64,000 bases of DNA from Octopus sinensis (taxonomy: Eukaryota). A model generated the notes under the pieces. The model made no database searches. It was not told where the DNA came from and saw only the letters and a list, made by a program, of their open reading frames with translations. Where the stretch lies: NCBI RefSeq assembly GCF_006345805.1, contig NC_043004.1, forward strand, positions 4,154,001-4,218,000, in the 5' to 3' direction. Of the stretch, positions 8,721 through 30,640 are shown piece by piece (position 1 is the stretch's first letter; every line of letters begins with the position of its first letter). Both the position numbers and the translations under genes were made by a program.

Positions 8721-9963
8721 TTGCCAGCCTCGTCTGGCCCCCGTGCCGGTGGCACGTAACAAGCACCATCCGATCGTGGCCGTTTGCCAGCCTCGTCTGG
8801 CACCTGTGCAGGTGGCTCGTAAAAAGCACCCACTACACTCACAGAGTGGTTGGCGTTAGGAAGGGCATCCAGCCATAGAAACGCTGCCAGATCAGACTGG
8901 GCCTGGTGCAGCCTTCTGGCTTCCCAGACCCCAGTTGAACCGTCCAGCCCATGCTAGCATGGAAAACGGACGTTGATGACGATGATGATGACAATAATAA
9001 TGATGTTAGACTTTATAAACAGCAATTTGAAACAAAAATAGGTGAAACAAGACAACTTATGTGAACTACATATCCATAGCTTGATGGTTAACCATTTTTG
9101 TGACTATGCTACATAGAGCCTGCCATTCCATCTATCTCAAACTAATTGTTTCTGTTTTCAGTAGTAATTATAATGATGTGATGTTGACACAAGTGAAGCT
9201 GACAGGGGAGGAATGACTTTTACAGGACAGCTACAGGAAGGTATATACAAATGAATATGACCAGAGACAACTACTTGCATAACTGCATCCCCACCACACA
9301 CACACACACACACACGTCGCTCAGTCATAATCACTTCTGTCTGTCAATTACTTTACACACATACACAGTCATAAAGGATAAGCAATACACACACACACAA
9401 ACACACACACACGACCACAAACATACAACCACATATGCACAGGCACACAAAGAAATGTGCAGGCTTGTGCTGTAAATAATGAATGAATGAATGATAGAAA
9501 GAAAGAAAGAAAGAGAGAGAGAGAGGGTGGAGGATGAGTATGAATCTGAATATTACATCAGGTTGCAGTGAGGAAAGTACAGAGATAAGAAAGTAACATA
9601 GCAACACTGCAAACCCAATAATGTGCAGCTCAAATGGAATAAATATCCAAGTGCTTAACTTCCAAACGGAATTATCGTGAAAGCCTGGCATGTTATAATC
9701 AAACATAAGCCAGAAGATATCCACATGTCTCGAATGTTGCTGCTGCAGTTATTGCTGGTGTTACTGAAGAAATTACCAAATATGGTTGTAGCTTCACATT
9801 AGGAAGAAAATGAAGGTGCTCCAGACCTTGGCACAGAATGAATGAAGTATAGAGAAGTATAGGGTGCGTAGCAGAGCATGAAAAAAAAGACAAAGAGAGA
9901 GAGGCTTCAAGTTTTGTAGGACGTAGTAAGTACATGAGCCATAAATATCTGAGTGTGTATGTA

Positions 9964-9981
9964 TGTGTGTGTGTGTGTGTG

Positions 9982-10041
<60 letters not shown>
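9964..10041. repeat. (TG)n(TA)n compound microsatellite
   Basis: Direct reading; it explains the YIYI/VCVC ORFs in the track. Confidence 0.98.
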
Positions 10042-10045
<4 letters not shown>

Positions 10046-27584: not shown

Positions 27585-27942
27585 CATTTTAATGTCTACT
27601 TTTCCATGCTTGCATAGGTGAGGCAGAGTTTATTGAAGCAGATTTCCTATGGTTGGATGCCCTTCCTGTCACCAACCCTCATCTGCTTCCAAGCAAGGCA
27701 ATATTTTCCCATGGCCAGATGTTTGTGCAGAATATTGGAAATGAATGACAATCATTTACAACAATCACACGATGTCAAGACAAAGAGAGACAATCGCAAA
27801 CACACATATACAACAGGCTTCTTTCAATTTCCATTTACCTGGGTCTGTAGTCAAAGACACTTGCCTAAGGTACCATGCAGTGGGACTCAACCTGCAAACA
27901 TGTGGCTGAGAAAGAAACTTCATAACCACACAGCCATGCCTG
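27585..27942 (-). mobile_element. SINE family A' (A-type head and core plus RTE-like tail)
   Basis: The + strand reads TTTCCATGCTTGCAT...GGATGCCCTTCCTGTCACCAACCCTCA...GTCAAGACAA, then the reverse-complemented A head. The same architecture occurs at 28835-29232, 30280-30640, 33575-34240, 37300-37720, 49505-49885, 52225-52545, 54700-55110 and 62045-62475. Confidence 0.8.
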
Positions 27943-28834
27943 GAATGCATTTATATTACAGGTAACACCAATGTATCAGGTTGCGTCCCTTAATGACAAA
28001 AATAGTAACCTAGCAATTTGATAGAGATAAACAGAGATTGATAAAATAAGAACCACTGAGATCAATATGACTGGTAAAATCCTTCAAGTGAAATTAAAGA
28101 TTATATATATTCAATCTGTTCACTTCAAATATTAATCTGCATTATATAAACCAATAGCTCAGCTATCAATACCATGGTATATTAATACCCACTACCTATC
28201 CTGCTCTGAATAATCTATTTACTAGCTAGCCACCCTTTGCTTTCTATTTCCATTAAAGTTATCAATCTCAATGTTCTGCAACGGTTGAAATACAAGAGAA
28301 TTTTATAGCATGTGTTATCGAAAGTTTAATGTCTCCAGGGAAGATACCCTGACTGATAAAACAACAAAGTTAGCTCAGCAATAAAAAGGTTTCAATATTC
28401 ATTTTTTTCTTATCAAGCACAATTCCAAATTTGACAGAAAAAGGATACAGTCAACTGGATCACAACCTCAATGTTGCTGCCTCATATTTTATCAATCACA
28501 AAGCAATAAAAGAAAAGCAACAAAATCAATATTTAGGGAATATGAAACTAAATACTGAATCCTTTTAGTTTAGCAGTCTACAATCTTGACTATTCTCACT
28601 GCTCTAATAAATGGCCAACAGCACAGATTTATTACAATATAACAGCCTAGAATCAATGGATTTTCTTTGCAGTATAGCATAATAGTATAGTATAATACAA
28701 ATGTTTCAGATATGAAGCCTTAATAACATAATATACATATGATCCTAAAACTGAAGAACAAGGAGGTTTCTATTCCAGATAATTTCATCCTCTTAAACAA
28801 AGTGGAAAGCAAAAACCTACAAGTTCAAGACGTC

Positions 28835-30640
28835 TTTGTTTTAATGTCTATTTTCTATGCTAGCATGGGTTGGACAGAATTTGTTGAAATGGATTTTCTA
28901 AGGGTGGATGTCTTTTCTCTCACTAACCTGCATCTGTTTCCAAGTGAAGTAGTATTTCCCTCATGACCAGACATGTTTTCATGGAATATTGGAAATGGAG
29001 GACACCACTTGGATGATAGTGAACTTTGCTCACAACTATCACACAATGTCATGACAGGAGACAGTGACAGACATATGATGGCCTTCTTTCAGCTTCTGTC
29101 TACCAAATCTACTCTCAAGGCTTTGGTCAGCTTGGGGTTATAGTAGAAGACATTTGCCCAAGATGCCACACAGTAGGACTGAACTCAAAATTATGTTGTT
29201 GGGAAGCAAGCGCCTTAACCACACAACCATGCATGCACTGATCAATTATTCTAAATGGGTTTTCTCAGTGCCACATAAAGTCTCACAGAGAACACAATAA
29301 GCTCAACCCTTATCTAAATTTGAAATAAACTGGAGTTAAGTGGGCTGTACAACCAGGAGGCCAAGTTTCCAACTAATCAAAATGCTTATTTCTGAATAGC
29401 GCAAAACATGTTTCATGATTTTGTCTACATCCTCACACTTCCATACAGGCTTCAATTTAAAACAACCTCAAGACAAAAATTACTGACATCACTAATATAT
29501 ATTGGATTTGTGCCATAGTTTTAAATGCAAGCAAGCACTGAAGGTGGTAGAGTCTATAATAGATTCTTGTATACTATGGTAATTAGTCATGATGTGTGTA
29601 TGTGTTTATGCAGGCAGAGCACTGCTGGCATTTAGTGTATTAACTTCAACTGCCAAAATATAGCAGACAATGGCAGACTGACTGACAGACAGACTAAGAT
29701 TACACAACTCTCAAACTATTTCTTCCTTCTATTCAGACAGATACCAATAAGAATAGCCAGCAAACTTCTACTGCTAAAAGATCATGGTAAACCAATTGGT
29801 TAGATACAAACTAAATAAAATATCTGTCAAAAAAAAAATTAAATACAATACTAACCGTGGTGAATTAACAGGGCTGCCACTAGCTACCAAACCACCGCAC
29901 GGCTGCTCACTGCCAGCACTGAAATTCCTACAAGAAGCGAGCTTTGTTTCGAGTGCCTGTTGTAAAAAGAAAAGAAAAATCGCATAAGAAAAATATACGC
30001 TCTCACACAGAAATGAAAATTCATTATGTTTCTACTTTTCAAAGAGTAATAACACTGTTGTAAATGAAATAGTTCCAACATATGTTTCAAATTGGCTTGC
30101 CAAATTAGAGTGCCCATACCACAGTCCCCATGATAAGCCCAACAGTAATAAACTTCTTTTTTCTTTGGTTAAAAGGGTAAAAGGACAAGGAGACATTCCA
30201 TTCCAATAAGATAAAAATGTTTCTGTATTCACCACAAGGGCAACAGATGAGAGGACATTACATAGATCGTTATTATCATTGGTTTTAGCATCCACTTTTC
30301 CATGTTTGCATGAGTCAGGTGGAATTCATTAAGGCAGATTTTCTATGGCTAGATGCTCATCCTACATTCATGTAAGGTAATATTTTCCCTTGGCCAGACA
30401 TGTTTTCACAGAAGACCAGAAATGAATGACATCACTTGTATGACAGCAACACTTGCTTATAACCATCATATAATATGGCAAGAGAGACACACACACACAG
30501 GGATTTTTTCATTTTCCTTTTACTAAATCCACTCACAAGGCTTTAGTCAGCCTAGGGTTATAGAAGACATTTGCCTACTTGTGACATAGTAGGACTACCT
30601 TGTAGTAGGAAAACAAATCATTTAACCACACAGCCATACC
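28835..30640 (-). mobile_element. Two SINE A' copies (28835-29232, 30280-30640) flanking the 29856-29956 exon
   Basis: Same composite architecture as 27585-27942. Confidence 0.75.
29856..29956 (-). CDS. nudE: NudE homolog, exon encoding the second half of the C-terminal helix
   Basis: Acceptor tttctttttacaacag|GCA and donor CCACG|gttagt (phase 2). The 101-nt exon encodes [33 protein letters not shown](R), cf. ALESKLAACRNF. Confidence 0.95.

Follow-up and report, generated by a model that had tools for sequence, protein, structure and literature searches.

Analysis of a 64,000-nucleotide (nt) window of the Octopus sinensis genome (CM016866.1, assembly GCA_006345805.1), whose minus strand carries the NudE gene (product name, nuclear distribution protein nudE homolog 1), showed that one splice donor, at position 29856 of the window, is joined to five annotated acceptors (22902, 19967, 19856, 18376, and 13249), giving six mRNAs with five C-termini. 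The explanation that we favor, and in which we have considerable confidence, is that the choice among these five acceptors keeps, spaces, or deletes the conserved tail of the protein, that two alternative exons with stop codons of their own are probably internal rather than terminal, that the layout pre-dates the split between cephalopods and gastropods, and that five other sites proposed from the raw sequence go unused. An initial annotation of this DNA had described an array of nine alternative terminal exons behind the same donor. Its central idea, that alternative downstream exons behind one donor diversify NudE at this junction, was borne out by the six isoforms, and the phase-2 donor at 29856 (CG/gt; a slash marks a splice junction) is real; four members of the array (22902, 19856, 18376, and 13249) are annotated acceptors, while 20491, 16882, 13100, 12714, and 9826 are unsupported.

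In a collection of 15 billion proteins, an exact look-up of candidate tails placed on the common NudE body found three present, named as O. sinensis nudE homolog 1 isoforms, and the octopus NudE cluster (8 of 8 members listed) consisted of isoforms X1 to X6 and two models from Octopus bimaculoides. The RefSeq isoforms are, in order, XP_036361098 (X1), XP_036361099 (X2), XP_029640013 (X3), XP_029640014/15 (X4), XP_029640016 (X5), and XP_036361100 (X6), and all six C-termini could be rebuilt base for base by splicing exons of the window. They have the residues ...SPVNSPR in common, and every one of them uses the donor at 29856. From exon 8 (E8), X6 runs directly to 13249, the canonical terminal exon (E9), and X3 reaches the same exon through a microexon at 19967-19935; X4 joins E8 to 22902, and X1 joins it to 19856; X5 passes through a cassette at 18376-18318 to 13249 in a shifted frame that ends HPV, and X2 uses both 19967-19935 and 18376-18318 before entering 13249, again frame-shifted. 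The conserved basic tail is removed in three of the five C-termini. XP_ records are models that annotation pipelines build with the help of transcript evidence, and the real part of the finding is already known in the sense that X1 to X6 are in the public annotation of O. sinensis; what may be new is more modest, namely, the layout shared by a gastropod and the octopus and the two stop-bearing exons found only in the octopus, whose retained CpG is a hint of constraint.

Word-indexed protein searches with the concatenated exons and with the C-terminal 76 amino acids (aa) returned no octopus protein, their only cephalopod match being a truncated Logan transcript that ends before the junction. 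This null is not evidence of absence, because the word-indexed search missed the O. sinensis NudE cluster despite a 100% identical query, and an exhaustive search of cluster representatives recovered it.

The identity of the gene is clear. Proteins of the NudE/NDE1/NDEL1 family have an N-terminal coiled coil and a NUDE_C region with a conserved motif; the motif was found in the octopus exons, and the match to NUDE_C (Pfam PF04880) reached 2.2e-25 and 90.6 bits, against a cut-off of 30.9. Homologues numbered 226 in the word-indexed search and 973 in the exhaustive search against cluster representatives. Upstream exons were located with a vertebrate NDEL1 probe and then with a cephalopod transcript, and their boundaries were set by the AG/GT requirement together with an exact protein match. 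E1 lies outside the window; the constitutive exons E2 to E7 span 36464 to 60438 on the minus strand, as E2 (60438-60285), E3 (49347-49199), E4 (44887-44842), E5 (42788-42698), E6 (40743-40513), and E7 (36534-36464). E8 (29956-29856, minus strand), the last exon common to all isoforms, follows ...acag/, encodes ...SPVNSP plus the bases CG, and ends at base 29856 in the phase-2 donor CG/gttagt, and the coding part of E9 occupies 13249-13189 on the same strand. The chain from E2 to E9 reproduced residues 31-330 of XP_036361100 exactly, and a phmmer search with the rebuilt protein found XP_029640013 at 7e-181 and 100% identity; the latter, at 341 aa, carries 11 extra residues before the canonical tail.

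CpG retention and acceptor quality together singled out real alternative exons from the raw sequence. When the 1103 AGs of the interval were ranked by a crude generic acceptor matrix, the annotated acceptors came 2nd (18376), 4th (19967), 15th (13249), 42nd (19856), and 290th (22902). The observed/expected CpG ratio was 0.82 for the 22902 exon (3 CpG in 83 nt), 0.60 for the 19856 exon (7 in 227 nt), and 0.73 for the 13249 exon (3 in 62 nt), compared with 0.23 in the intron and 0.51 in the confirmed exons. These are the three exons for which CpG retention had been noted beforehand, and all three are annotated. Each of the nine positions listed in the initial annotation does follow an AG, and the peptides quoted for them were reproduced; drawing nine AGs at random from the 1103 would recover at least four of the five annotated acceptors with a probability of ~1e-8. 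The annotated 33-nt microexon at 19967-19935 was absent from that list.

The canonical exon E9 (coding part 13189 to 13249, minus strand; isoforms X6 and X3) encodes R/SSRLKRGAVHQRTPLNVTM, with its stop codon at 13191-13189. Its tail, SSRLKRG...NVTM, is a version of the metazoan tail xKRxxRG...VKIxV; in molluscs, annelids, echinoderms, hemichordates, and others, NudE ends in ...SPR/xKRxxRG, 8 to 25 further residues, and VK[IV]xV. An anchored profile built from 28 distinct tails (38 sequences) of other animals was scored against the AG-defined tails downstream of donor 29856, and the 13249 tail ranked first of 682, ~4 standard deviations over the mean and with the best N-terminal score. Local alignment of mollusc tails with the intron had given chance-level scores even for the true 13249 exon, and the anchored profile was used instead. 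Polyadenylation (polyA) signals, counted as AATAAA or ATTAAA, are missing from the 2.15 kb after the E9 stop codon (0 versus 4.0 +/- 2.0 expected, P ~0.016), whereas the stretch from 11035 to 9000 holds five (2.2 expected), which run from 11035 to 10191. Judged by these motifs, the 3' untranslated region (3'UTR) of E9 appears to be ~2.2-3 kb long; its probable extent on the minus strand is 11030 to 13188, up to the first signal (AATAAA at 11035), with more signals down to 10191. The proposed acceptors at 13100 and 12714 probably lie inside this 3'UTR, and 9826 would lie beyond it. The same two hexamers were enriched on the sense strand of the opening portion of the last intron (22903-29855; 24 versus 13.4 expected, P ~0.004).

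Two of the alternative exons are cassettes rather than terminal exons. The 33-nt microexon (19967-19935, minus strand; X3 and X2) begins and ends in phase 2 and inserts SVPSHISGCRG, adding 11 residues before the conserved tail; it lies 79 nt upstream of the acceptor at 19856, and reading past its donor at 19935 leads to an immediate stop (TAG at 19933-19931). The 59-nt cassette (18376-18318, minus strand; X5 and X2) encodes QQLLSATTYSDRRQWKGSI plus one G, has its donor at 18318, and puts E9 into the frame that ends HPV, with the stop codon at 13238-13236; the X5 tail matched no Pfam family. The proposal that all of the alternative exons are terminal was not supported: the 22902, 19856, and 13249 exons contain their own stop codons, but 18376 opens the 59-nt cassette and not a terminal exon of 64 aa, and strong donors follow the stops of the 22902 and 19856 exons.

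The stop-bearing exon at 22902 (22808 to 22902, minus strand) gives the X4 tail, R/LVSLAPHRSKYQKLTRNSSDQNTVYI, with its stop codon at 22823-22821 and an exact protein in XP_029640014/15; the one at 19856 (19591 to 19856, minus strand) gives X1 a tail of 74 aa after the junction arginine, SSFAVHLLV...NTTRPVA, with an exact protein in XP_036361098. Neither tail matched a Pfam family, and a search for a transposon origin of the alternative exons found no copies of them in the window or in ~200 kb sampled from O. sinensis and O. bimaculoides. In the 22902 exon (last exon base 22808), the donor CAG/GTGAGG follows the stop codon by 13 nt and, at 13.1 bits, is the best donor-like site of the region; 40 nt after the stop codon of the 19856 exon (19633-19631) comes CAG/GTAGGC (last exon base 19591), at 10.4 bits. 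Constitutive donors scored at their true positions (E2, E4, E5, E7, and E8) reached 5.3-10.2 bits. The 22902 exon could be terminal or a 95-nt cassette; because a donor 13-40 nt past each stop beats most constitutive donors of the gene, it is more likely that both exons are internal, stop-carrying cassettes that would splice on to the last exon and keep its 3'UTR and polyA site. X4 is listed under two XP accessions with the same protein, a pattern consistent with mRNAs that diverge past the stop codon. An ATTAAA and a genomic A12 run occur at 22759; after the 19856 exon, neither AATAAA nor ATTAAA appears until 17447 (~2.2 kb), and the depletion of polyA signals around that exon (1 versus 3.4 expected) was insignificant. 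By the usual rule, a transcript whose stop codon is less than ~50 nt from the next junction need not be a decay target, and the 22902 and 19856 transcripts, if spliced directly to E9, would for this reason not need to be.

Comparison with other molluscs suggests that much of this arrangement is old. In the cluster listings, alternative tails at the same ...SPR junction were the rule among mollusc RefSeq models. Pomacea has five distinct tails (canonical; microexon plus canonical; microexon plus SHLHLLRELSA; SHLHLLRELSA; and SPR followed directly by a stop), Ruditapes also has five, Littorina and Mya have three each, Mytilus has at least three, and Argopecten has two. With five tails of its own, Octopus does not stand out, and the description of its tail set as expanded was not upheld. 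The non-canonical tail SSALW[NT]RIRQFTGPKE is kept between Ruditapes and Mya. In nudE-like 1 of Pomacea canaliculata (XP_025087738 etc., X1-X5), the order is a 33-nt microexon (ag/G TCT GAG...AAC AG/gt), a 20-nt cassette (T CAT CTG CAT TTA TTA AGA G/gt) that shifts the last exon into a frame reading E-LSA before its stop, and the canonical exon. Mytilus californianus has a 30-nt microexon (ag/G TCA GAT...CCA AG/gt) ~6 kb into a last intron of 9.4 kb, and protein sequences of Littorina and Argopecten carry inserts of 11 and 10 aa, respectively, at the same junction point. The octopus microexon at 19967-19935 (G TCT) has the features of these molluscan microexons: a length of 30-33 nt, phase 2 at both ends, serine first, and a position between the exons encoding ...SPR and xKRxxRG.

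Octopus and Pomacea thus share a phase-2 junction after ...SPR and, downstream of it, a microexon, a frame-shifting cassette after which the last exon ends within 3-4 codons, and the canonical exon. The agreement with Pomacea in order and phases makes it probable that this layout is older than the split between gastropods and cephalopods, and its comparative value lies in being common to one gastropod and one octopus. The two differ in that the cassette is 59 nt long in the octopus and 20 nt in Pomacea and in that the octopus introns are about ten times longer. Unlike Pomacea and the other molluscs, the octopus also has the two extra stop-bearing exons (22902 and 19856), whose tails are unrelated to those of other species. 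At the last NudE exon of Mytilus californianus, we also observed a tandem NAGNAG acceptor (acag/cag/AGCT, at ~32365-32375 of the fetched stretch), which accounts for the SPSRAKR and SPRAKR variants of that species.

Within the genus, Octopus vulgaris differs from the window over this interval by ~1.3% mismatches plus indels, an event rate of ~1.7% that gives little test power. Across the 453 nt of the four alternative exons, O. sinensis and O. vulgaris differ by 2 changes where 7.7 were expected (Poisson P 0.018, permutation P 0.066). One of the two replaces R with Q and the other is synonymous; they fall in the 19856 exon and leave the open reading frame (ORF) of X1 intact, and the 22902 exon is identical in the two species. 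The signal of constraint on the alternative exons within Octopus is suggestive but weak. The O. bimaculoides DNA at the locus of XP_014774211.2 stops short of 22902, at what corresponds to window position 26037. An assembly gap on O. bimaculoides CM046608.1 (~79540-80010 of the fetched stretch) takes in E8 and probably explains both the end of XP_014774211.2, ...QKVGVSSLTLY, where the E7 donor is read through, and the unrelated tail of an older model.

We consider it very unlikely that the full nine-member array is real and that annotation missed five of its acceptors. Annotation pipelines do miss rare isoforms, and one of the five sites, 20491 (tail RSSC followed by a stop), has a good acceptor sequence that ranks 9th of the 1103 AGs. 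The others, all likewise on the minus strand, are 9826 (61st; in microsatellite-rich DNA downstream of the polyA-signal cluster), 12714 (105th) and 13100 (537th, a poor acceptor), both in the probable 3'UTR of E9, and 16882 (126th; a hydrophobic ORF of 68 aa). Exact isoform proteins for 20491, 16882, 13100, and 12714 were absent from the 15-billion-protein collection, the 9826 tail was in none of the eight octopus cluster members, which comprise only X1 to X6 and the two O. bimaculoides models, and four of the five sites, 20491 among them, have no CpG, the exception being 16882 (2 CpG in 206 nt), near the intron ratio. Nor do open frames help such sites. The minus strand from 9699 to 29855 contains 1102 AGs, which define tails of at least 4 aa in 901 cases, at least 9 aa in 619, at least 20 aa in 317, and at least 60 aa in 41; because every AG defines a frame to the first stop, an open "in-phase" frame does not select among candidate terminal exons. 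Taken together, the listed sites are in this respect not statistically special, and the caveat attached to it, that one acceptor in three is in phase by chance, understated the problem. The five sites are ordinary intronic, 3'UTR, or downstream AGs. The O. vulgaris annotation has a 101-aa "gene" in the TA/CA microsatellite-rich DNA just downstream of NudE (window ~9795-10100; 104953-105258 of the fetched O. vulgaris stretch) that overlaps 9826 and looks spurious.

A more serious competitor, although one that we think clearly less probable than our favored explanation, is that function is confined to the canonical junction, perhaps together with the microexon, X1, X4, X2, and X5 being splicing noise at a low level or by-products targeted for decay that were promoted to isoforms during annotation. 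The non-canonical tails have no Pfam match and no homologue was found for them outside O. sinensis and O. vulgaris, the 22902 acceptor is weak and the genomic A12 run downstream of it could cause internal priming, and the constraint signal between the two species is marginal. Against this reading, 18376 and 19967 are among the four best acceptors of the interval, the 22902 and 19856 exons retain CpG at 0.82 and 0.60 against 0.23 in the intron, and the 74-codon X1 ORF stays intact in O. vulgaris; the same frame-shifting design exists in Pomacea, and the tail kept between Ruditapes and Mya shows that molluscs can maintain non-canonical NudE tails. Birth of the alternative exons by tandem duplication, as in clusters of mutually exclusive exons, is the least probable account of all. 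It had been suggested by tails beginning R-S-S/G, and three of the five annotated exons do start with G TC(T/A), giving serine, against a background of 6.9% serine starts (P 0.003). The arginine, however, is forced by the donor (CG plus any base), S-[SG] opens 11 of the 1102 AG-defined tails by chance, and serine comes first in the microexons of other molluscs as well, so that the serine starts look like a preference of the junction rather than paralogy. Pairwise local alignments of ten exon regions, compared with shuffles, gave nothing significant save for physically overlapping segments, which leaves no alignable sequence between exons; no repeat in a self-BLAST of the window covered any candidate; and the exons differ in role and in length (33, 59, 95, and 266 nt, plus the 61-nt coding part of E9). 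Several alternative exons behind one donor are also seen in clusters of the Dscam type, but the octopus exons differ from those in having no sequence similarity, unlike lengths and phase behavior, and in being combined rather than mutually exclusive, X2 using two cassettes.

Several points weigh against our explanation of one donor, five alternative acceptors, and an inherited layout. An ATTAAA lies ~60 nt past the stop codon of the 22902 exon, which, like the 19856 exon, may after all be terminal. X1 to X6 are supported here at the level of XP_ model records, not of reads, abundance, or tissue distribution. The sole other octopus model with an alternative tail, CAI9726952 of O. vulgaris, is identical to X2 but of uncertain independence, because the O. 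vulgaris annotation pipeline used protein alignments alongside Iso-Seq and RNA-seq (PMC10700109). The octopus peptide SVPSHISGCRG is only weakly similar to the S[ED]xx[HR]GxR of other molluscs, fitting it only with a two-residue gap (S...H..G.R) and being too short for statistics, so that the case for microexon homology comes from its position, phase, length, and first serine. The cephalopod comparison of the alternative exons covers O. sinensis and O. vulgaris, E8 of O. bimaculoides being in an assembly gap.

If our explanation is right, the five acceptors would compete for the single donor at 29856. Choice of 13249 would keep the conserved basic C-terminal motif, the 19967 microexon would space it by 11 residues, and the 18376 cassette or the 22902 or 19856 exon would replace it, so that acceptor choice may switch between retention, spacing, and loss of the motif. 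LIS1 is tethered to dynein by NudE proteins, which bear regulatory and partner-binding sites in their C-terminal halves. A conserved switch on the C-terminal motif, if true, could tune dynein regulation between tissues, which would be relevant to an animal whose nervous system is very large, and the non-canonical tails are proposed as putative diversifiers of dynein/LIS1 targeting. A bolder version, toward which we are rather doubtful, holds that the octopus-only stop-bearing exons are maintained, possibly tissue-specific modules that replace the basic tail (especially the 74-residue tail of X1, with its retained CpG and a frame open in O. sinensis and O. vulgaris alike) and that the switch formed by microexon and cassette has been conserved across Mollusca for about half a billion years. 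To our knowledge, a Mollusca-wide NudE switch consisting of a microexon and a frame-shifting cassette has not been described in the literature.

Vertebrate NDE1 and NDEL1 likewise have alternative C-termini downstream of the conserved ...CRNF region; their tails are not homologous to those of the octopus, and the NDEL1-type junction lies further downstream, ~40 residues after CRNF. In NDE1, the choice is between terminal exons 8T and 9, and 8T can also splice on via its own 5' splice site (PMC5339911). An exon that may be terminal or spliced on in this way parallels the octopus stop-bearing exons with strong donors after their stop codons.

Other features of the window lie apart from these exons. 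A patch of ~1.5 kb at 58750-60250, in the intron just downstream of E2, is rich in GC (0.46-0.52) and CpG. A CpG-dense element at 24900-25300 in the last intron, with up to 18 CpG per 200 nt and a tandem duplication of ~49 nt inside it, has a 90% identical copy upstream of the NudE gene (8786-8953 of a fetched O. sinensis stretch) and resembles a young transposable element more than an exon or promoter. A SINE-like repeat family is present in up to 13 copies (4875-5415, 10392-10715, 14718-15087, 27580-27956, 28839-29238, and others), and intra-window repeats make up ~18% of the window and overlap none of the candidate exons. Rfam and tRNA scans of the window gave no matches. A further source of isoforms lies upstream of the shared donor: E7 is 71 nt long, and skipping it shifts the frame. 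An E7-skipped O. sinensis isoform, which is without annotation, would end ...TNKGTRNKARFL. A transcript from the Logan read archive (SRR24189492, from a cephalopod, with a protein ~74% identical) joins E6 straight to E8 and ends ...KGARNKAGFL, and E7-skipped, frame-shifted isoforms are annotated in Ruditapes (X6), Mya (X4), and Haliotis (X3).

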